A stretch of DNA of 64,000 nucleotides from Ophelia neglecta (taxonomy: Eukaryota): positions 27,218,001 to 27,282,000 of the forward strand of contig OZ260667.1 in NCBI GenBank assembly GCA_965285935.1, in the 5' to 3' direction. The first letter of the stretch is position 1. Each line of letters starts with the position of its first letter. The notes beneath the pieces were generated by a model. The model had not been told where the DNA came from. It saw nothing but the letters and a program-made list of their open reading frames with translations, and ran no database searches. The position numbers were made by a program, and so were the translations under genes. Below are positions 5,794-23,700 of the stretch, in pieces.

Positions 5794-8700
5794 TCATACA
5801 TAGGTTTGCCTGGGGGGAGCGCTTGGCTCAACTCTGGTTGACTTGGCAACATAATCATTATAGGTAGGGGGTGGCCCCGGGTCACCCTGGGCAAAGGCAG
5901 CTCTGCGGTCAGGGGCCAAGGCCCGGGCCACATACTGACTGTTGTCATCCGGCTGTCTATACATGGCTTGTTCTCGCCCACGAACATGTTTAGCTCGGCG
6001 AATTGTCAGCGATTTACGATCTAAATCTGACAGCAATTCCTTGTTCTGTAAAACAAACAAACACATTTATTGTGGCTTATAGGCAAGTGACATAAAAACA
6101 GCTAGGCAGAGATAACAAAAATACATAAACTTTTGTTTTTTTTCACTGTTAATTTTTCCAATTTGATTTTGAAAAAAAATTGACGAAGGGAAGGGGGAGC
6201 AACTTTCTTTTAATGCTATATGCCACGGACAGCTGGGCAGCTGATTATTTCTGACCCTAACAATATGTTAAAAGGCATTGAACAATCCAGGGCCTGTAGC
6301 CTACAACAGGACAGAACAAACCCATATTACCAGTAACACGTCCTCTGCTATAGACACAGGATACAAGTATGACATCCTGATCAGTTGCACAAATCAACTA
6401 ATTCAGGTGGGAAAGACTTAATGTATTTAACTAAGAAAATAAAGATACAGTGAAACCTGTTTAGTGGACCACCAAACCAACTGGGGACTATTGGCTGATT
6501 ATAAAGGTGGTCTGTTTAGACAGGTTATTTTTATATTGATAGCATTCAGTAAGGTCTTCCTACTGGTGATCTCAATTGGGCAGGTGGTCCTAATAGAGAG
6601 GTGGTCTTTAAGGCAGGTTTCACTCTATTTCACAAATTGAAAAGCCTGAAAAATTTGTCCTTGAAGTGGAAAAACATTTAATGATTTCTACAGTTGCAAT
6701 TTTCTATCTTTCTGGAAGAAAATGCAATCGAAGAAATAAAATAGAAAACAAAAATAACACATTTTGAAAAATTGTTTTTGGTTACTGACTTTAGTTTTTA
6801 CTGTGGCCAGAGGTTTTTTCTCCAACTGCTATAAAATATATGTAATTGCTCAGCAAGTAGTACATATGTCATAACTTAAGTGATTCCCTTTACTTTTAGG
6901 ATGGCAGTTTTAAATAATAAATTAAATACCAAATCACAGATAACTCGCCGAGAAATCTAAAAAGGTTATGGCTGGGCATTCCTCTAGTTCTTAGCTGCAC
7001 TTGACATACAAGCACACTTTAACTGCAGTGATATCAATAAAAGTTGAACACTCAAAGGGTTATTTAATAAATAAATGTGTTGTGGCAGAACATATGTTAT
7101 ACTTACATCACTTGCATGCCATTGGAGACGTTCTTCTTCCTCCTTTCTCCTCTTACGATCCTAGAATATTAAAACAAGCAGGTCATAGACTTTTACATGT
7201 ATTTTTCTGTGATGCTGTTTAATAGTCCATTAAGGTCCAGTCTTATCATTATGTAAGACTTTCCTTCCAATATTTCAGTGGGGAGGGGGGGATATGGGTT
7301 GTTTGTGGCATTTAAATTCCACTAAAGGGCCAAAGCAACTTAAAACATATCGCATTAGCCTAGAGACTCGTATCCATATTTGGGACTGGAGTCTTAATCT
7401 TCAATACTATCTAATATCACTTTTTCTTTACAACATCAATAAATGTGTTCAACTAAATACTTTTCAGCTGAATATATTGCGCACCTTAATTATGTAATTC
7501 AATCAAAGTCTTATAAGTGACTAATACTTACCAGGCAACTAATAATACAGCTGAGTGGTATCCACAGAACTATAGAGAACACTAATACAGTCCCAACTAT
7601 ATTGGCTCGCATAAACTCCACTGTTGTAAAAAAAAAAAAAACGTATTTAATATTGAAAACAAAGATGATCAGACTTTTTTTCCATAGCTCCATAGTATTG
7701 CCCCAAATAGTACATACTTCATTCTTTGCATATATTTTTAGCTTAACTTAATTTTTAATGTATTATGGGCATTAATGTTAGTGGCAGAGTTTGGTGATAT
7801 TAGGTAGTTACCAAAGTTGCTGGTAGTGATGGTTTCAATGATGTCCCAGATTCTCTCCACAAGATTCTCAACCTGTTTCCTACATGTACCCTGGAGACAG
7901 AAACACCACCTGAAGGCTTAACTAAATACACTTGTATATGATATGTAAACAGCTAGCTAAGTCTAGAGGCTTTAAACATAAATTCAAGGTGAAATTACCA
8001 TAATGGCTAAATAATATATTAAAATAATGTGTACTCATCTTAAGTCAAAATAAACTAATATTTGAAATACAAAAAAATTGTACTTTGGTAATGTCATATA
8101 ATTTCTGCTTTTAGGATGTTAATAGGTTTGGGGCCAGGCAGATAATTAGGTAGTTTCATAATACAAATAAAACTACAATGATGTGACACACATAAATGAA
8201 ATCCTGTTCTGTGCAAGGCCATTATCTCTTTCTCCCCAAAGGCAAATAAGTCAAGTATTTGTTCATTTTCAGGATATTTCCTTTATTTGACAAGGCCTCC
8301 CCCATACTGAGTCAATAACCCAAATAAAACTGAGTTTTGATAACATTTTGATAAACTGTAATTGTCTGTTAGATTAAATGTGCAAATTTTACAAACAATC
8401 TAATTGGTGGCAAAATAAAAAACAGTGGATTATCAGTAATTAAGCACATAGCACTGCTTTAATTGTACAAATGGTATCGCCATTAGGATCAGCCCACAGT
8501 GGATTATCAGTATTTAAGCACATAGCACTGCTTTAATTGTACAAATGGTATCGCCATTAGGATCAGCCCACACACCAATTGGCGGGAAGTTTATTGGCTG
8601 ATGTGGGTATTGGCAAATAATCAATCAGTGCACACAAACATAAATTTAATGCCTGGCAATAATCCCTAGTTTTACTGTAGTGCACAGGGGTAAGCACCGA

Positions 8701-11700
8701 TGCTTTTAGAGCCTAGCTCTCAGATACCTGAGAGGGGCTAGTGGTATTCCTGATCCACCTGGATTGTCCCCTTTTAACCTAGGCTGTGATTTAAAGTCTC
8801 AATTGTCTGGGACTCGCGATTGACATTTGTTATACTTCGGGATCAAAGGCTCTCATTTCCTGTTGGATGTGAATGTTCTGATTTATTTTTTGTGACTAGG
8901 GATTCACTATTTCTATTTGTCTGGATACAAAAAATAGTTTAATCTTTGTCACATGAACAATTCAGATTTTTAATATAAGTGATTCTGGATTTTCCCATTT
9001 TTTAAACCGTGAACAGGGAGTAAGTACCCCTCTATTAAAGCTCCCCTCTTACACAGTATGTCATGTGTATCAGGATCTATATATACTACAACTTTACATA
9101 TACACATGTCCTACATACATGTATAAATATGTCTGTGTTCAAAGGTTGTAAATCTGCATGTTACTTTATAGCAAGATAGGCATACCAGAGATCTGCCCCA
9201 TATCAGTGCATAGACTTGTACTGAATTACAAGTTATAATGAAAATCTCAATGAAGCTGGGATGGTATTTTTTCTTTCTGGAGTAAATTGGTTGGCAACAA
9301 TAAAATGAATTGCCATGTCTAAGCTATTTGCTGGATGTAGAAGTACAATGTTTACACATGTATTCCTAATCTGTGAAATGAACAACCTGAAAAATACTAC
9401 TGTTTGCAAAAACTTCAATTGAATCCCATGGGAACTTTGACCATTTCAATATTAAATAGACATTTATAAGCAATTCTATTTTAGGGTCATTGCTTGCACA
9501 TCATTCTCTAGATAAAAAGCTTATCTTTGGTTTTCTTACATCAAGGCAATCGCCAATGGCACAGGGCACTCCGTTGGGTAGGAAGAGGAAGGTTTCTCCT
9601 GGCAAGGTCATAACCTCCGCTGTACAGTTACTATTTGGATCCCAAGGGTCTCGGCAGCAACGGTGGCAAGAGTGCGCCACTGAAAACCACAGCAAAAATC
9701 ATAAAGTGTTAGAATCTTAATTGACCCCTTAGCTTTCTCAGATAAAAAGCTGTATAGAAATAGACAATATCTATCCCAATAACATTAATATTAAACATGC
9801 AGTGATAAAATTATCATATTCTTTATATTTAAACATATTTGGTATATAGCCACAATTGTTTTTAAAATTAAATGAATGCAGGGACAAGATGGCCTTACCC
9901 TCATCACAGATACATGAGACCAGGCCTCGGCTCTCACAAAATTGTACACATGTCCCATCCTGGCATTTACCACTGAAAGAAAGAGCACAGAATTGTGAAA
10001 AAGATACCCACATTTTCTAAAGGCAGCAAGCTTAGCATTTTTCAAACAGTAACATGATAAAATCCAGCCCATAGTTTATAACATGCATATTTGCACTACC
10101 CAACACCTTAAATGCTAATATAGTTTCAATACGTAGTATCAAAACACATTTTAGTTCTTTGCACTTCTGTTTAGTTTTTGGTAAAATCATACATACCCTC
10201 CAATACATTCAGTGTTATTATCCTTCACATCTGGTTTGGGACAAATCTCACTGAATCCACTAAACTCAGTCAAGGACTATCAAATTTCAAATTACAATTT
10301 GCCACAAATAAATGAACAATTTTTCATATGAATTTAAAATATGAAAGACTTGTTGGAAAATATTAGAGATCCTAGATTTAAACATCACCTCAATTCAAAC
10401 ATGATATTTTTCTTATGTATGCGTGGGGTGTTTATGTCCTAAAGGATACGTGCACTTGGCAGAACCCTCACAGGAGTAGTTCTGTGCAACATGACACTCT
10501 ATGTCACTCGAGGCATAATCACAGTTCTTGCAGCAGACGCTGTTAACATCACTATTAGGAGAAAAGGTTAAAAAAATAAAACATGATGAAAATACAACTT
10601 CTCTGAATTATGAATAAAGAAAAATCATAAGAGATAACATTATCAGAATTATTGACTAACTGGCATGTATATATGACTAAGCAGGTATTTTTAGCTAATT
10701 TAGGTTCCAATTTAAGGTGAATTGTAAAGGAATTATCTATGAGATAGTTGTTATCCAGTTGTGACAATTTGATATGATTTCCTGCATGCGAGGGTATTCT
10801 TTAATAATACATTCTGGGCAGTGCTGATCTCACCTGCATATTTTTCCGGGTCTCAGCATACAGTGCTGGTTACAGCAGGGGTCATTGTCCTTGCTGACCT
10901 CTGGACCTGGGTCACACTCCTCCTTGCCCTCCACGCGCATGTTACCACAGAAACCATCACTCGGAACTGGGGGGATAGAAGTTAACAAATACTATATACA
11001 CAACAATGTCAACCAGGACACAGCTGGACTCCTATATATTAATTTTATGTGTTATCAAATTGCTTAGAGATAAAAATAATATCTTAACCTTATGGTATTA
11101 GGCAATTTTCTCAGCAGCTTATATCTAAGTTGCCCACACCCATTGTTGAAAGAAAGCAGATTTTCTAATGCATAAATGTTAAACAGCTCAGCAAGACACG
11201 ATGTGTTTATATGAAAATTTGGTCAATTACACAGGTGATTAGGACACAAAGCCTGGAATACTGATGTGACACTGTTTAAAAAAGCATTGCCATCATAACC
11301 ATCAAATTGTAGCATCAATTGGCATAACACTCTGTAGTGCTGAATTTACACATTTCTAGTTGAGTTGTCCCTCTGTGATGTATTGCCTACAGACTATATC
11401 TCTAACCTACTGGAATGAGATAAAGACTAGTCACCTCTGAAGCAGACGTCGTGCTTCGCCTCAAGTACAGCACTGATTCCTCGTTTGCTGCATGGTGAGA
11501 ATACCTAGAATACAGAAAACCACAAAATCTCCTGTTTACAACAATTGTATGGGTCTGACGATGTCACAGCAGGGGGTATGGAAATTGCATATCAAAGGTT
11601 ATGATTATGTCATAACAGGGGCCACAGTGATAAAAATTAAATGGTATATTAGAAAAGTGCAATGTCAAATGCTACCTGACCAAACACTTATTTTTTAAGA

Positions 11701-14700
11701 GCAATACCTTTCTTCACATGTGCAGAATAGGTATACAACACAAAAATTAGTCTCCAAGAAGTATTGTGGGACATTGGGAATTCTAAGACCCTTGAGTGTA
11801 TATCAGGGTGTAGATCTATTACATCTGCTTTACTGATTGAACATTTACTTATTTCCTGTATTAAATTAATATTAAACTTGAATACATGTTCACGTCTTGA
11901 TCGTGACCTGATTTATTAAGTTAATTCAAAACATGTTATTTCAAAATCCATGTCCACTGCTGACCTTATTATTTTGGTCATAGCCTGACACACTATAGGT
12001 GTACATGATGAACTTTCCTCCATGAAACGACGAAGGACTGCACTCATTTGTGTCAGGGTCATGTTCACTGCCCCAGTTGTGGCCTACAAATGTCATAAAA
12101 TGCATTCATTGTAAATTTTCTACTAGGATTATCTACCTATTGGTTCTTAGGTGATAGTTATTTAATATTTGGGTTCACTGATGTGCCAATTTTGATTTTG
12201 CAGTTTTCAATACAATCATTTTCATAAATATATTTGCAGAAAGTTGAAAAATGATCTTCAATTTTATTTTTTATTTTACTAACAGATGGTGGAGTTTTCC
12301 TCAAAAGGTCTGTGAACCTATACATCAAATACCTATCGCCTTAAATACAAGTGTCAAATTATTTATGGAAAAATGGTTTGATGATAACAGTATTTAAAGT
12401 GAGCCAGTAAAACTGTTGAAAACTATCTGGATCTCCATTGCAATAGCGATGCCTAAGACTGTTATTTTTGTGGGAAAAAAGCTAGAGAACTACAATGCCA
12501 TTGTAAAGCATTTGGGAATCTGTACTCCAGTGAGCTGTTGCAATTTATACAGGTAAATTATAATTTCATAGATGAGTAATGGGCTAGAGTGAGAAGAAAA
12601 TTGTCAGGACAATAAGACCTTTTACTTTTATTAGTAATTTAATAAATGAAGTCTATGACATCATCATGTCTACAACTTTATCTTATTCATGTCTATGACT
12701 TAATCATGTCTATGATTTAATCATATCTATCATGTTTAAGACTTGATCATGTCTATGGAATTAATCATATATCAATCGCTTTATCATGTCTATGAATCTA
12801 TTGATTATGTCTACAACTTGGATATAATTGATTATATCTCACCAAATTCATGTGTAGTGACAAGGTCTGCCTCAGAGGTGAGCAGTCTACGATTGTAGCG
12901 ATTCAGGGAGCTGCTCCAGCCAGTGTTCAAATACAACTCCTTGCCGCTTTTATAGTAAACTGAAATGTCGAGAAGGTATAGCTACTGATATAAAGGTGCA
13001 TGAACTCTTAACGGCTTACAATATAAAAAATAAATACAAATGCTACCATGAGCTTTCTACACTATTTTAGCACCACATTAGGAGTTAAATATAAGCAATA
13101 AACTTGACTTTACTGCTAGCAAACTGGAAAATTGTAGATCATATATATTCCTGACTTAAAATATAAACTTGGCATGAAGTGTAATACTAATAAGTGAAGC
13201 CTACAAATCTAAATACAAGTGCTTGGTAGGATGTACAGGTTTATGGCTTTTAGCACATTGTATATCCAGCATCTAACAAAGCAGAAAACTGAAGGTTAAA
13301 TCAAATTATGTTAAGAAATTATCAATAATGTTACCAAATCATTTTCTATGATAATTCCAAAGCATCTATTTATCTTTGCTACATGTTCCTTTCTCCACTC
13401 AAATTACTGGTGGAGGTATATTACTTAATGGACACCCGAAATTATAGATAATTAAAATGTAGAAAGGATATGATATGAGATGATGTCATGATTTGAGTGT
13501 TTTAGATGAAATGTGTTGACAATGAATTGACAAACCACATAAAAAACACAGAAGCATGAAGGTTCAAGCCAAGAAGCAGATCGTTTGATATCAGGATTTT
13601 AAGTTTATCTACTTCAAAAGTTCAACTTATGTAAAGTGGAATCATAATCAGCCATTTCATGACGAAACATTATAAGCATCAAATTATTAAAATATGATTC
13701 AAACGCATTTCTACATAATGTTTGCAAAAAAAATGAAACAGGTGTCACTATACAAAACAGTGGTCTCATTTTCTGGATAACAAATAGGTCTGCTACAGAA
13801 TCAATGAATGAAGGCAATGAACTGTGGACTGACTTGAAGCTTTCTACTTAGTAAGAAACAGCCAATTAGTGTGACAAGCCATAGAGGAAGTGTGTATAAA
13901 TTAGTAGCTTGTGAATTAACATACGGAACAAGGTTAAATACATGTGGCTAGAAGTGGTCCATTACAATCAGTGAACTGAATGTCATGGGCATCAGAAATA
14001 ACATCCAAGGCTCATTCTACAACAAAGATGGCCTAATGTGCTGCCATAGCTAGAACACAGATCTGTGCCCACCATGTTAATAAGAGAAGCAAACCTTAGC
14101 CAAAGCGATTACAAAGCAGTACATACCAATCCTGGAGCTCTGTTCTCCAAAGGGCTCTAGTTTTGACAATATTCTGATGCAACATGCTTTTTTTTCTTGA
14201 AATGACTGGATGCTTCAGACACTAAAATCTATGTAGGCTTCATTCAGGGGAAAAACCAATAGATTCTCTAACATGTGCTGAGCAGACTCTTACCCCTCTC
14301 TTGAGCTCCCTTTATAGAGTGCTGACACACATTTCATTCCACAGACATGGCTACTAATCTTAGATCGGTGGGTTGGAAATTTTACTAGCAGCAAATTGTC
14401 AGTAGAGCTATGCGAATCAGACGTTTGTTTAAGACAGGAAAAGGTTAGACTGGAACATTAAAGCATTAATTTGTGAAATCAATTTACATATATGGTCTAA
14501 TGGGTTAGAGGCCTAACTGTGTGCATTAATATTGATTATTATAATTTAATTTATCTTGAAGATGTGCAAACAATTTATATTTTGTAATGTTGTAGAGTGT
14601 TCTCAAGAAAGTTTTTTACCCTGTGACAGCTACACAGTATGCCTTGACTCCAGCCAATTAAACTGCTCAGGCACTAAGTCTGTTGGTCTAAAAAACCTTA

Positions 14701-17700
14701 AGAACTAAAAGTGAGGGTGATGTTGAAAATAGTGTATACAAAATACTATAGGAGGTAACTAGGGGAAAAAATGAAGCAAGAATTAGGTACTGATTTCTTC
14801 TTTAAACTTATAGCCAAGGTTTTCTTTTTGCTCCAAACATATACAGCCTTTGCTGTTCACAAAAACTAGGTACATTTTACTGATGGTGAGGACACAGATG
14901 ACAGGAGCCAATACATAGTACAAGGCAGTCTATTATACCAATGTGCTGCTTTAGAAGCTAACATTCCCAACCAATCTTATTTCTAAACATAATACCCCTG
15001 AATAATATTAATGAACCAGCCAAGCAGATGTCACATATTATTTAAGCAAACATACTAGCTATTGCAGCTATATGGCAAATATAATACAAAGAAAATATAT
15101 TCTTTTTTGTATGGGTTGCTATGGTATCTGAATATATTCAGACTTCCCCTATAAGTTAATCTATCTTTATTTATTGTTGCTTATTTATGCCTCACATCTG
15201 GAATACTGTTTGTGGCAATGCACAAGCTTTGAGGGTTAACAAGTTCATAACTAACAGTAGAGTAAGATGTGAAGTACACAGGGTCTTGAGCACTTATTTG
15301 TACAAATTTCCCAGGCCTGAAAACATTATGTATATAAAATAGTTTTCATGCTTCAGTTGTTGCCCAGTTGCAACCATATCTAAAAACTTAATAATAGAAG
15401 GTCGTTTTCAGAAGACTGAGCCAAAAGCACATCCACTCATTTTTGAAAAAAAATGCCAGGCAAGATAACACTCCACAAATCACTGCTAACATTCCCTAAA
15501 TATAGCACTTCTTAATATCCCTTGCACAGACAGACTTTCTAATTGTATAAAGAGGATTTTGTTATTTGTTCAGAATTCTTACAATAGGTAACTGACATGC
15601 ACTTAGAACTTCAAAATAGTCTACAAGCTAACACTACATTTAAAACTTTGGCATAAGATTTGTGAAAAGATGGTAGGTTCCAAAAATGAACAGAAGAAAT
15701 TTAAAGGCATGAGTATATAAAATACATATGAAAACATCACAAAGCATGATTGTTGAATTTTTTTAGAGGATATGATAATTGGTCATTAACAGGTTATTAA
15801 TCAATATCAATTTGTGTTTTATAACGAAGAGGACTTTATGATAAACAACTGTACCTTCAGGTTTTTCATTGAGATTAATGGACAAGATACACTAAAATTT
15901 GTGTTAAAATTTCTACTGAGTGATAGAAATGTCGGTGAACCAGCAGTTGATGAGTGTGAAGTAAGAAAGCAGGGAAAGTTTTAGTTTGTAGCATCAGCCC
16001 CCTAAAAGTTCATCTTGTTGTTTAGTCAGTTAGGTAGCATTACATTTGCTGCAGATTTATTTTTACATTTGAGTGTGAGATGGTTGTGGGACACATGACA
16101 GTCACATGATGGTCTCATGACTTGATGGATAATCACCTGGAGAACAGATGCCGCCAGGATTGAAGCGGAACGAGGAAGCGAGGTAGGAGAGGCCGAGTGT
16201 CCCTGATTTGAAGGTCAAAGCCGTGAACAGGTGGGACATACAGAAGTGAGCATGGGTGCCATTCTGGGCAAATACCTGAAAGTAAACTGTGTCGTAAAAC
16301 TAAACCAAAGCTAACAGTATTTACAGGCACATATACACTGAACTGCAAGCCAAAGGCTAAATGTCAGTGTCCAACTTAACTCTCTTATTCTCTTATGGTG
16401 TGGGCTATAGCTGATTAGGTTTGGGATAAGAACAATGGTACCTTTATATATCTTCATATGATCTCTTCATATGAGAAACAGGTTTATATTTTAGACTGGC
16501 CTCATCCATGTTTTACAAGACAGTAATATTGTTTATTGTTCTGAATATTTAAGTTTCAGGTAGGATCTGTGGGAGGTGGATTACACACTAAATATCACTT
16601 AAATAATTGTTTCTCTGAAAAGCATCTATTTTAACAGTTGAACTAACATGTTCATTTAATCGCTAAGACTGTCCATTTGATAGGATGATATACTGAGGAC
16701 ATTTAGGGTCATCATTTCTCCTGACTGTACTGGGAAACTCCAAGAAATAAAGGGTTCGTCCAGGGTGCAAAAGAATATAATGCATAATTAACCCTAAATT
16801 TTTACGCCAATTTTCTTTGATTCTGATAAGAAGACCACAAATCACCAGAAGTTATGTAATTTGTCTCACTCTTTTTCTCCCAAAGAGCATTCTCACATAC
16901 CAAATCTTAATACATATATTGGCAAACATTTGTCCCTATTTACTCACTATGATGAACTGTATCAGGGTTCATCCAAGTTTCCCTTATGATAATCTGCCCC
17001 TATTCTTTTCTAAGTGACCTATTTTTTCTCACTACAACATGAAAATGTGTCAGTATGTCTTTCACTCAACAACCTATGAAGTAACTCCATTTTGCAGTGG
17101 CTGTAAAATTGGCAGCCTTGTGAATAGATTTTGGCTATGCAAATCATAATCATAAAAGCAGCTGACTTATAAAGAATACACACTGTTATCATAACACTAT
17201 TAGTATAACATAGCCCTCTTCAATATACTTATCTGGCCTTGAATGCACTAGGAAAATTATTCCTGTATTCATAATTTGACAGGAAGTTATTAAAAAATTA
17301 AATTATAAATGGAAGGAGTAGGATTACTGCCAAATATTGAATCAAGTTAGTAGTCAGACACTGAACCTTTGGTACGGTCTCTCACATGAATAGGTTCTGT
17401 GGGAAAAGTGGTCAAGAAGTTCTTTTTGCCTTCAACATGTTTCTTATGGTACAATTACAATATTTGGCTTTTCATTAAACTTGTTTAAATGTACCAGCTC
17501 CCAGCCATTACCTCTTGACCAGTTTTCACACAGAAGCTGGGCCGAGAGGGACACAGAGACATGCAGGGGATTAGTTGCCATGGTAACATCTCCCACAATT
17601 CACCTGGGGAGCAGACACCTCCCACTGAGTACTTTCGCGGTGAGGCGATGTAGGCCAGGCCCAACACACCGCCGTCAAATGGCTGGTGGGTGAAGAGATG

Positions 17701-20700
17701 GGCCAGACAGAATGAACGGAAGGTCTTGTCTGCACTAAATAGCTGAAAGGAGATGCTTCATGATGAACATGGTACATAAACAAGTGTGTTATTATTAAAA
17801 TACAAGGGCAACATTTACACCCTGAGAGCTCTGTTATTTGAGTCAACCTATGAGTTGGTAAATTAAAGAGGACCTTGATACAGTAAAGCAGAGTTCCTTT
17901 GTTTTATTAGGTTTCCAGTTAAGTGATATGGGAAAATTTCCCTTGCTTTTCAATTTTTGAATTATTTCAGAAGCAGATGTGTGGAAATGTAAGGTATACA
18001 AATGTTCACTTTTTTTTATTTTAACAAAAGCAGAAATCATTAAATGGTGAAAATTATATGCTCATAAAAAAGGTGCTTCTAACTGTGCTTGATAGGTGAA
18101 GAAATATCCCAGCGGAAAAATTATGGTACTTGAATGCTTCAGGCTAACACTGTAATGTTTTAAGAATTCAAGTAACTAGCATAAGAGGATGTGATACAGC
18201 TAATCTCTTTTTGAACTGACTTCTCAATAATAAAATGGAATAGACCTTAAGTGATAACATTTGACATACTGATAGTTATTATAGTTGTGAAAAGCAACAC
18301 TTAATTGTTTGCCAAATAAGAATAATAAAGAATAATAACATGGTTTGCTTACTTCTAGTAATTTTTTTGTTTGCCACAAATCTTTTTTTTCGTTATAATG
18401 TGGTTCATACTTTGGATCATCACGTGGGAGAACAGGAGTGGGAGCCTCATGGACTCTTATCTAAATAGGAAGAATAAAAAAGGTTTCATCAATAGATATC
18501 ATCAAACTCAGTATTACCAAACCATAAGATGTAAAGAATGGTACACAGTGCACAAGATATTAAGTTATGGAAGGAGGATCTTGACAGATGACCCTGACAG
18601 ACTTCCTTGTGTTTTCTTCAGTTTGGGATGTCCCTTCATTATAGCACACCTTATGAGCATACTGGTGCCGTGTGACATATAACATCCACCAAAGAGTGGC
18701 CGAGTGCTTAGGGTGTCCGCCTCGCGAGTTGTAGATCGGGGTTCGAATCCCGATCGCGTCAAACCCAAGACGTTAAAATAGGCACTGATAGCTCCCCTGC
18801 CAAGTGCCCCATATTTCAGGGGTAGTATCAAAACTGGTCAACCCGGTGTCAGTATAATGTGACTGGGTGGGGTTCCCTGACTGGTGTCTATGGCAGCTAC
18901 TCCAGTGAGGCAGCACTATAAAGAGGGCATTGGGCCTACTGCCACAAGTAAACACAGTGGCAATATGACCCTATAAGTGTTGAAAGCCACGTAAAACCCC
19001 AATCAACAACAACAACAACATATAACATCCTCATACTATAGAGGAAGCCTTCATGAGGGACCATCATATAAGTGGTCTTATAAGAAGGGTGTTCTCTCAT
19101 CTTGTTTTATACATTGCAGGTATAGTAAACTGTTTTGCAAAAGGAGCTATTTTGTTTTTATTTTTTTAGTGTCCTTCAGCAGTTGTTCCACTGTATTAGC
19201 TTAAGTTCCTTGTGTGGCACTGAGTTTTTTCAGTGTGCACTTCTTGTGAATGTCAGTTCAAATATGTAACTACATAATCGCAATACATAATTATCTGATT
19301 AGATATGAAATATCTGATTATTACACAATTATTCAAATTCACTACATTATGGATCAATGACCAACCTCTTTGATTTCAAATCCCATCCCCTTGAATCCTT
19401 TTCCAAAGTCAGTTGCTCTGTATATGCCGTCTACTCTGTCAATTAACCCAATCTGAAATAAATTATCATATATTTACTGAACAAATATTATATCTCAAAA
19501 CAAATATCATATGTACTTTATATTTAACCCCTCAAGAGCCACCCACCAGTGGAATTAGTTAACTTATCCAGTAGCAATCATGAAATTGTCTAGGCTAGTT
19601 TAATACATGCGTTTAAATTTAAAAACAAACAGGGTATGTTGTTGCACCTCATTTTCGGTACACAGTTATGATCATTTGGGCATGGACAGACTTTACATGG
19701 TTTAAGTTGTATTGATTATCATGCGACATTGTTTATTGGGATTGTACATGTTTACAAACTCCTGACTAGGTTAACACTTTCACGATTTAAATACTGTTGC
19801 ATTATACACAGTGACACAATGTAGCCTGCCAAGAAAACAAATTTCTTTACAAATATGATAACCTACCAGGTAGCTAGTAGTCTGTGACAGACTGCTTTGA
19901 CCCATGGTTTCAAAGAATCGATAATCTGACACAAGTAGTAAGGGACAAGTAGTACGTGTGGGTGTAAAGAAAGAGCGCGACTGTCTCTTCACCCTGGCAT
20001 GCGACTCTAAAAAAAAAAACATGGATTTTATCAACACCATGATATTAATGGTATTAATGGCATAATTTTTTTATTCAAAAATGAAACTAGAGCATTGTTC
20101 AGATACTACATATTTTCAGGTTTTTCTGTTTTAAACTAGGATGATCAGTCATATTAGCTTACCAGTTGACTATTTAAGCCAAACATAAATTTTTTAAGTC
20201 CTCCTTTAATTTTTAGTCAGTTTAACAGAGATATACTTATGAATAGGAACTGAAATTATTTAGAAGAATGTTGATAGTGAAATTATGGTTAAGAGGACCA
20301 TGGCTGTCATTGAGAAAGCGGTGTTTAAAATGCCTACCATTAGCATCGGTCACATTGCCCATGGAAGGAGTAGTTGGAGGAATGGAATAATCTAACTCTG
20401 GATTCACAAAACCACAGTATTTATCCCTGAAAAGAAACAAAAAATGAGGGGAATACTGCACAATAAAATATTAATTAACAACAAATGTTTAGACTTGAAA
20501 TCTATCGGGCTATATGTCTGGTTCTTACCTAATTACAATCTATGTTAAATTCTCATTTTAAAATAACTTTTTTAAACAAAAGAAATGAGTATTAAGCATA
20601 CCCCATGTCTTTGTCTAGTATGAGATCTGATTCTTTATAAGCTATCATGGAATTGTTTTGCACATTATCCAAGTGTCGCCAGGCAGGCTGCAAAAGAACA

Positions 20701-23700
20701 AATGCCTCAATTTATAAGAAGGTAATGTTACTATGACACAAACCAGATGCAATATTTGAATGTTTTATGTTTCATAATCAGTTCACTATTTCACCATTTA
20801 TGACAAATTATGTATTTGATTCAGAAATATTTAAGACTGATATTTTAGACTAGAGTGGTTGTACCTCAATCATGTAAACTTCATGTTTGGTTTTAATTCT
20901 AGCAGTCATGCTGTTCTTTTCATCCCAAAAAGCACTGACCGTAGAAGACCATGGCTCTTCTGTAAATATATAAGAACTCTTCTTTTACATTGAAATCATA
21001 TTTACAATAAGAACTATTCCATATCAAAATGTTCCTGGGGGGCAGGCGAGAAGAGAAACTTAGATGTGCAGAAAGAGGGGAGGGGGGTAATTGTATGGAA
21101 AGGGGGGGGGGGGTAATGGAACATTCTGTATGATGGTGGGAGGCGGGTTCAAGAAACTTAAATGAGGGGGGGGGGGGGGTTAAATCAAAGTCTTCAGGCC
21201 TTTCCCCTCAAATTGGAATAGCCCCCCCCCCCCAAAAAAAAAGGGTGGTTTATATATCATTGTCACAGAAGAGGGTTTGATGAGCTCCTCTAAGAATCTA
21301 ATTCATTTAATATTATTCACCAGTTAATCTATGAAACCACACTAAGCAGAGCACAAGTATTGAAATATATATAAATATATAAACATAATTTAATGATTCA
21401 AGAATTGTTGACAAATATGTGAGGAATAATTGGACAAAAAAAAACATCTAAATCAAGTGAGATGAATGACAATTACCTTTATTATAACCTGAGAAAAACT
21501 GTTTTGTTTCTACATTAATATCCCTCTGTTTGTTGTTTTTGTCAATGGCATAGGCCTTGAACCCTGGTGAGAAGAGTCCAACTCGCTTGGTCAACTTCAA
21601 GTCAAACTTTCTAAAATTACAGCCAACATGTTATTAGTTACAAGTATATAGTGTTTTGTGTTAAATGCTTTCAGTAAGTCCTAAAACCTACAATGAGACC
21701 TGTGAATTAAGATCACCAAAGGGACTGCAAAATACTGGCCTGATTTCAGAGGTGGTCTGTTAAGACACTAAAGACAGGTTATTCAACATTGAAAGTATAC
21801 AGCACAGGCCTCATATTAGTTGACAGGTGGTTTGATGATTTAGAGGTGGTCTTTAAGGCAGCTTTCACTGTATTTTCAACAATAGTACTGGACTTTCAAG
21901 AAGGCTGATTTTTGTTAATTATGAATTTGGTCCACAATACTTTACACACAATGTGACACACATGAGCGATAAGTAAAGCAATAGGGATCACCGGCTGACC
22001 TCAGTCAGCGAACGTGGACATCATATAACTGGCTTTTTAAGGTATACAAATAAAATGTAATTCTATCTTTAAATGTTAGTCATGAAAAAGTATTAGATAT
22101 TAATAACCGGCTGGCCTAATAGACGTTGATGTGCATGCAGAACTTTAAGAAAAATGTTCATACTTTCCAAGAGATTCAAACTGCACATCTCTCTCCACGA
22201 TGTCTTCCCCATCAGACAGACTTCTCTTGGTTATTCTGTGATTAACTTGTTCATCGTGTAGAACTTCAAAGTGATGTAAACTTCCATCCAGCTCAGCTTA
22301 AATAACACAGAAGATTTATACTTGTATAATCTGAGTAAAATTATCTGAATATTTTGTCCTTTAATAATTCAAAATTTTAGACAAGAAATAAAAGATATTC
22401 GGTCAGCATCAATGCTGTAAAAAGTATATTTCTGCCAACAATTTAGTACCAAATATTTAGCTTTTCAAGAATGGCTCAGTTTATTTGAAATGATAGTTTA
22501 TCTGCAAAGAATGTATTTTCAATAATAGAAATGCAAACCATAATTCCAACCAATAGTTTTCATGCTTTATTAAGGCCAACATGTAATAATTAACACATAA
22601 CAACCCAACTAACACACTAGGCCGAATACAACCACCATAAGCAGTTAACAATATAAACCTTCCACATTGATAGAACAGAAGCATTTTTCAGCCTTTTTCA
22701 ACCTTTAACATATACATTGTATGAACCCAGTAAACATTATTTGACAACTTAAACTTAATTGATATTTGATTTATTGAGTAAGATTGAACCTCCTCAATTT
22801 TACAAGTCACCCCATTAGGAAAAGAAATAAAAATTCATTGGGCCTGTCAGGAAATTTAAATTGCACTATTTTAAGGCCGGATCACACTGCCCTAAAGTCG
22901 CATTAACGCATGAATCATTCACAAATTTCCATCTCCTCAATAGTTCTGACGTGGAGCATCTGTAGTTGTCCGTCAATGTTTGCCAGATCGGTGCTTTATG
23001 CGATTCCAGGTTTTGAACAGCTTAAAAGTCAGCATCGCATCAGAGTTTACTGAGTATTGCGCTGTTGAACGTTATTGTTGCGAAATATGCGTGGAATATC
23101 AGTGATCGTTCGCAAAACTGTTGCATTCATCGATGACTTTCTACTGATGATTAGCAGACATATGACGCATGTTTAGTGCTTGTAACACCAACGTATCACT
23201 GATCAAAAAAAATTATACGCTGTTCAGTAGTGATAGTGCGCACATTATGCATGGTTTTCAGTGGAGCTTACGTAACACACAACCACGTATTGGGCCTGTT
23301 TGGGGCCTCTGCATGCCTAAACGCTGATGTGTGTGGTTTGTTAGTGATTTGTGTGTAATCTTTCCGTAGTTCTACCACAATTTATCGGTGATATTTCATT
23401 GAGTACATCAGCAAAAAAATTGTCAAATTCTCGACGGACAGGCACGCACAACCAATTTTTTACGCGACTTTTCGTCAGTGTGATCCGGCCTTAAACTCAG
23501 GCCTCTTATACTTGTACACCGGGTGTATTTAAAAGGTGCAACCACGGGTAACCACGGCAAATCAAGGGCAACCACGGCAAAACCTGCACAACACCTGCAC
23601 ATCACACGCCATGATCAGATGTAAACACAGAAGAACAGGTACGGAGGTAAGCTTGGATTTTTGCTTCTAAATGGTCAGCAAGTTATTCAAAAATAACTTT

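Follow-up and report, generated by a model that had tools for sequence, protein, structure and literature searches.

A tandem pair of probably mutually exclusive exons for the substrate-binding rim of an ADAM17 orthologue in Ophelia neglecta

The exon pairs IIIb/IIIc of FGFR2, 9/10 of PKM and 8/8a of CACNA1C are the classic cases of mutually exclusive exons. Such exons are well known to arise by tandem duplication (PMC9013439, PMC9741552, PMC5740500). We describe here a pair of this type in an ADAM17-like gene of Ophelia neglecta, contained in a 64,000-nucleotide (nt) stretch of assembly GCA_965285935.1 (contig OZ260667.1, positions 27,218,001 to 27,282,000), which is referred to below as the window and is numbered from its first letter. 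The two exons, 10a and 10b (labels taken over from an earlier note on this DNA), resemble the known pairs in being adjacent and homologous, of equal length and phase, apparently ancient and under purifying selection in both copies, and in having the reading frame as at least a partial guard of their exclusivity. They differ from them in the module that is exchanged, which would be the substrate-binding rim of a metalloprotease active site, and, unlike docking/selector systems such as that of Dscam, no competing RNA structures were found around 10a and 10b. TNF, EGFR ligands and many receptors are shed mainly by ADAM17, and the basis of its substrate selectivity is debated; we know of no other sheddase with such an arrangement.

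Human and other vertebrate ADAM17 (1BKC, 3G42, 3CKI) has the fold, zinc motif, Cys333 and Cys365, HLFT and Leu348-Gly349-Leu350 that are common to the products of both exon versions, but no alternative version of this segment has been described for the vertebrate enzyme in the papers searched. A parallel exists in the brachiopod Lingula anatina, where the RefSeq isoforms X1 (XP_013383110.1) and X2 (XP_013383117.1) of an ADAM 17-like protease, of the same family as the window gene, are identical but for the exon at the same position. X2 has the canonical, a-type version (LGLAYIGS), whereas X1 and X3 carry LGLSYVAS in its place. As far as is known, the NCBI pipeline makes alternative isoforms only where there is transcript support. 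Unlike 10b, the Lingula alternative exon is six residues longer, through an insertion in the bulge, and has no Asn-Pro before the GG. Full-text literature searches (ADAM17 mutually exclusive exons; annelid alternative splicing) returned no description of alternative catalytic exons in ADAM17, and ADAM genes are absent from the human tandem-exon catalogue paper that was checked. The earlier note had reported no knowledge of a previous description, which is true of the papers searched but has to be qualified by the Lingula isoforms, which already stand as RefSeq models.

The features of the window on which the argument depends are as follows.

7538..22324, minus strand: ADAM17-like gene, approximate span, from exon-by-exon tblastn against the full-length homologues P0119 and P0006
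18353..18460, minus strand: constitutive exon upstream of 10a and 10b, 108 nt, phase 0 to 0, ending in ..KKLLE
17604..17742, minus strand: exon 10a, a-type, canonical, 139 nt, phase 0 to 1
16276..17603, minus strand: intron between 10a and 10b, 1328 nt
16137..16275, minus strand: exon 10b, b-type, divergent, 139 nt, phase 0 to 1
12843..12959, minus strand: constitutive exon downstream of 10a and 10b, 117 nt, entered in phase 1, ending in ..ADLVTTHEF
11956..12084, minus strand: next coding exon, with GHNWGSEHD.. and ..IMYTY, its borders being those of the tblastn match only

Exons 10a and 10b are homologous, lie next to each other on one strand between common constitutive exons, have the same length and phase, and are bounded by canonical splice sites (tttcag|CTATTT..CCAG|gtgaat for 10a; tttcag|GTATTT..CCAG|gtgatt for 10b, whose acceptor has a pyrimidine tract). 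Neither has a stop in the frame that the upstream exon dictates, and that exon in turn aligns to residues 272-303 of P0119. The peptides agree at 21/46 residues and the DNA at 71/139 bases, with 21, 31 and 18 of 46 identical at codon positions 1, 2 and 3; such near-random third positions beside well-retained second positions are what an old duplication constrained at the protein level would leave. Searching the window by tblastn with either peptide recovered these two copies only (cross-hit E ~1e-11; next match E > 0.2). The window exons were searched singly and the consequences for the frame were read off single-exon translations. When 10a and 10b are joined together, 10b is read in another frame that is also open and the next exon then reads Leu-Leu-stop; when neither is included, a stop is met at codon 11 of the next exon. 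Both stops fall in the downstream exon 12843..12959. The earlier note had proposed two homologous 139-nt exons of phase 0 to 1, a stop three codons into the next exon upon double inclusion and an early stop upon double skipping, and the translations and exon borders bear it out in each of these respects.

Judged by its matches, the window gene is the orthologue of ADAM17/TACE, an M12B (adamalysin/reprolysin) metalloprotease. Residues 5-673 of the full-length homologues are covered by tblastn over window positions 22324-7538, so that the matches to P0119 and P0006 begin in the prodomain and reach as far as the membrane-proximal and transmembrane region; P0006 has the Pfam domains Pep_M12B_propep, Disintegrin and ADAM17_MPD, and its catalytic domain is also present. 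The zinc motif HExxHxxGxxHD is split over two downstream exons (..TTHEF | GHNWGSEHD..) and is followed by the Met-turn (..IMYTY). Both 10a and 10b match human ADAM17 at equal residues (chain positions 112/113-148 of 1bkc; E 8e-11 for 10a, 8e-5 for 10b), and ADAM10, the next family, is matched more weakly (E 1e-6 and 1e-2, respectively). The Pfam families Reprolysin_2 and Reprolysin_5 fell below the cut-off for the exon, as expected with a 46-residue piece. Numbered as in the full-length chain 8snl_A, the matched segment extends from roughly Ser330 to Pro366 and includes Cys333 and Cys365, the equivalents of which are present in 10a, 10b and every homologous exon examined; their disulfide partners are presumably Cys225 and Cys469.

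Exon 10a codes the Cys333-equivalent and HLFT (strand III), the bulge, VLGLAYI (edge strand IV) and ..SVGGVCSP, with the Cys365-equivalent; 10b retains both Cys, HLFT, the Gly before the edge strand, LGL and GG.CSP. According to a review of ADAM17 structures and inhibitors (PMC12491190), the backbone NH groups of Leu348 and Gly349 form hydrogen bonds with ligands, Thr347 and Leu350 help to form the non-prime hydrophobic site, and Ala351 and Val353 make hydrophobic contacts; Thr347, Leu350, Ala351 and Val353 line the cleft. Because the exon matches these human residues, and following the description of this region (PMC12491190), it is assigned to strand III, the bulge, the substrate-pairing edge strand IV and the loop to Cys365, that is, to the substrate-binding rim. 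The earlier suggestion that the segment forms the bulge and edge strand at the active-site cleft therefore agrees with the alignment to human ADAM17.

A comparison of ten a exons with ten b exons in human numbering reveals a consistent set of differences. Position 351 is Ala in all a exons versus Ser in all b exons, position 347 is Val in all a exons versus Thr, Ser or Ile in b, position 353 is Ile in a versus Val or Leu in b, Arg357 is found in every a exon but in no b exon, and positions 360-361 are Ser-Val in a versus Asn-Pro in b. Both types have Leu348-Gly349-Leu350, Tyr352, the two Cys, HLFT and GG in common, and 10b of the window carries the b-specific Ser351 and Asn-Pro360-361. PMC12491190 lists three of the type-specific positions (347, 351 and 353) as lining the cleft. 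From these positions we infer that the a and b isoforms differ at the non-prime side and the upper rim of the cleft, and the b-type changes probably alter substrate or inhibitor preference. The predicted model of the b-type catalytic domain of P0006 has a mean predicted local distance difference test score (pLDDT) of 88.9, with 93-97 over the exon, and shows strands at LSHLFT and GLS. Because this confident model superposes on TACE crystal structures (template modelling score 0.88-0.91; root-mean-square deviation 1.3 A), the b version is predicted to be compatible with the normal protease fold.

The pair is found well beyond this genome. A HMMER scan with 10b of 1.84 billion representatives gave 105 matches, most of them nearer to 10a, together with a distinct set nearer to 10b that has the signature LGLSY..NPGGICS. 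The top match (P0001; 1676 residues, 15 stretches) was set aside as a repeat protein outside the ADAM family, matched through a short ..FSFNPG-like stretch. Two further searches, a word-index search with the b-exon region of P0006 (two proteins) and one with a b-exon profile (15 short fragments), used an index too coarse for 46 residues. Tandem a/b pairs occur at nine loci outside the window (L007-L015). The order a then b, with AG|..|GT borders, is seen in Capitella teleta (L008), Lamellibrachia satsuma (L007), two tubeworm-like ENA assemblies (L009 and L010), a Logan contig (L012), an ENA contig (L013) and two JGI contigs (L014 and L015). Exon lengths across the loci are 139, 142, 145 or 148 nt, all 1 mod 3 with the exception of L009, and the logic of the frame is therefore kept. 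The arthropod and nemertean genes and proteins that were examined have the a type only, and the nemertean Tubulanus polymorphus has one a-type exon in the whole gene. At L014 (L014:488-2190, from JGI 3300005648) the exon is present three times in tandem (c, a, b; 139 nt each); copy c groups with the a-type exons and looks like a further, lineage-specific duplication, and P0011, from another sample, resembles it.

Maximum-likelihood analysis of the exon peptides unites the b exons with the alternative exon of Owenia fusiformis in one clade (support 95/89) and places the a exons with the single-copy exons of arthropods and nemerteans and with Lingula X2. When the Lingula alternative exon is added, all alternative exons fall on one side of a branch (79/88), and those of Lingula and Owenia pair with each other (89/81). 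We read 10a as the ancestral and 10b as the derived form. Among the three tubeworm-like genomes (L007, L009, L010) the ratio of non-synonymous to synonymous substitution rates (dN/dS) is 0.09-0.22 for b and 0.04-0.05 for a. Between window 10b and the Capitella b exon dN is 0.32 and dS about 2, which is saturated (ratio ~0.16), and the non-synonymous share is far under the neutral expectation (P = 6e-4). Window 10b, itself one of the 11 b exons aligned, retains each of the 15 residues that do not vary among them. Since the pair is common to annelids and to Lingula, where it appears as annotated isoforms, and since the dN/dS of b is well below 1, an old duplication under purifying selection is strongly supported by these comparisons. 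This is what had been supposed from the window sequence: the pair is present in at least three named annelids and six further contigs in addition to the Lingula isoforms, the 10b-type exons of annelids and of the brachiopod are in frame except at L009, and the dN/dS of b is not near the value of 1 that would mark a decaying pseudo-exon. In L007, L009 and L010 dS is about 0.4 for b and about 1.6 for a, over some 33 synonymous sites; the lower value for b could reflect extra constraint on synonymous sites or sampling noise.

Evidence that b-type exons are used comes from relatives. Besides the Lingula isoforms, P0006 is a complete open reading frame of 763 residues which takes up nearly all of a 2436-nt Logan contig and is thus transcript-like, and in it the b exon alone is joined between ..ELLE and VYYK... 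The earlier claim that one gene makes two sheddases can accordingly be upheld for relatives, through Lingula X1/X2 and the b-only open reading frame, and is an extrapolation from them for the genome studied here.

We consider it highly probable that 10a and 10b are mutually exclusive exons derived from an ancient tandem exon duplication in an ADAM17 orthologue, with one or the other used in each mRNA. The duplication of this exon in a lophotrochozoan ADAM17 would have given rise to 10a and 10b, and each mature mRNA would take one of them; as 139 nt is 1 mod 3, the inclusion of both or neither would shift the frame and bring a stop in the next exon, and such aberrant transcripts would code a truncated protein without the zinc site and would presumably be cleared by nonsense-mediated decay. 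The two products would share the prodomain, zinc helix, disintegrin and membrane-proximal domains and would differ in strand III, the bulge, edge strand IV and the loop to Cys365, i.e., in the upper rim of the cleft that pairs with the substrate backbone. More tentatively, and with somewhat greater doubt than confidence on our part, annelid and brachiopod ADAM17 may have been a splice-switchable sheddase for more than 500 million years, providing two enzymes whose differing preferences for substrates, prodomain or TIMPs would be set by positions 347, 351, 353, 357 and 360-361.

Several points weigh against this interpretation. The splicing of 10b in O. neglecta is deduced from its sequence and from the use of such exons in relatives, and a functional difference between the isoforms is a prediction from sequence for every species. 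P0006 could derive from a b-only paralogue, such as the one next to the paired gene in Capitella, and it therefore proves the expression of b-type protein rather than exon switching within one gene. The b exon of L009 (L009:4156-4165) starts GCG TTTT AGT versus GCG TTT AGT in L010, which breaks the frame if real; because the remainder of this exon shows conservation (dN/dS 0.09), the extra T is probably a homopolymer assembly error rather than a real frameshift. In Owenia (L011) the alternative exon (145 nt, LGLSY) sits upstream of a, and with this reversed order the history may include more than one duplication. Finally, the exon tree is based on 46 columns only and is suggestive, the monophyly of b with the Lingula exon not being strongly supported (79/88).

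If 10b were a decaying pseudo-exon in this genome, a relic that is no longer spliced in, its weaker match to TACE and its longer terminal branch (0.52 vs 0.33 for 10a) would be accommodated, as would the reliance on relatives for its use. Such a relic is nevertheless improbable given that 10b has an open frame with canonical acceptor, donor and pyrimidine tract, keeps all of the b-invariant residues as well as Ser351 and Asn-Pro360-361, and shows non-synonymous change relative to Capitella far below neutral, although a recent loss of use would still be compatible with the sequence. A regulatory role, in which 10b acts mainly as a poison exon whose inclusion along with 10a lowers ADAM17 through nonsense-mediated decay and yields no b-type protein, would draw on the frame shift and stop upon double inclusion and on the alternative frame through 10b that happens to be open. 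It would need no conservation of the protein, yet Cys, HLFT, LGLSY and NPGGICS are kept across phyla at a dN/dS of 0.09-0.22, and relatives have both a complete b-only open reading frame and b-type RefSeq isoforms; we regard it as very improbable indeed. The remaining alternative concerns the age of the pair. Independent exon duplications could have converged, the window pair then being younger than the annelid-brachiopod split, and the upstream position of the Owenia alternative exon, unlike in other annelids, the insertions and long branches of the Lingula and Owenia exons, the lineage-specific third copy in L014 and the single copy in the nemertean Tubulanus would all fit such a history. 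Against these stand Ser351 in LGLSY, which is common to all alternative exons and occurs in no a-type exon examined, and the best tree, which sets the alternative exons on one side of a branch. Convergence seems unlikely, if less so than the other two, and would alter only the age of the pair and not the reading of the window as one in which 10a and 10b are spliced as mutually exclusive exons.

As to how exclusivity is achieved, the safeguard that can be demonstrated is the reading frame. With an intron of 1328 nt between a and b here, and of at least 354 nt elsewhere, steric hindrance was dismissed as an unlikely cause. An inverted-repeat scan of 12900-18400 for competing docking/selector pairings, which would miss short or imperfect ones, gave short pairs at chance level and one local hairpin. 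This stable hairpin, which the genome contains once, is formed by a 29-nt inverted repeat at 17392-17420 and 17510-17538 whose arms are 86% complementary and enclose a loop of 89 nt. It occupies the stretch 66-212 nt past the end of 10a, within the intron between 10a and 10b, and has a folding energy of -44.7 kcal/mol as RNA (z = -2.9). A similar structure was looked for in the a-b introns of six further loci and not seen; one of these introns held a 17-nt pair 348 nt apart. A 14-nt pairing of 16273-16286 with 16549-16562 (86% complementary) would cover the 10b acceptor and is short enough to be due to chance.

A natural isoform pair, kept in more than one phylum, in which only the cleft rim is swapped and the type-specific changes hit residues already recognised as cleft-lining in drug-design work, would offer a compact and testable set of candidate specificity determinants and, if our reading is true, the determinants of specificity in the ADAM17 cleft would already have been mapped by nature. 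Invertebrates with two or three ADAM10/17-type genes could in this way diversify shedding without gene duplication.

The exon pair also flags errors in gene models. Two public models (KAI0243261.1, L007:21835-22978, Lamellibrachia satsuma; CAH1772916.1, L011:11620-14587, Owenia) contain parts of both exons in one protein, and these fusions look like annotation errors due to the pair; the L. satsuma gene is also divided into two public models. Capitella, which has the nearest exon sequences to those of the window, carries two adjoining ADAM17-like genes on KB296906.1 (L008:12331-12469, L008:24241-24872), of which ELU11170.1 has the a/b pair and ELU11171.1 a b-type exon only. The latter has LGGSY for LGLSY, a dN/dS of 0.47 relative to the other b exon and a model without the Glu-Phe of HEFGH, and may be degenerating or mis-modelled.

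The genome of O. neglecta has three catalytic-exon loci of the ADAM10/17 type. A second ADAM17-like gene lies on the same chromosome at a distance of 3.7 megabases (G000:C12:23550834-23550968; L003:1498-1638, minus strand), and its homologous exon (..CLVHLFTYLAFSDGVLGLGWIA..) falls with its Capitella orthologue ELU09130.1 (P0074) into a well-supported clade (99/97) apart from the other exons. On C5 there is a weaker, ADAM10-like exon (L004).

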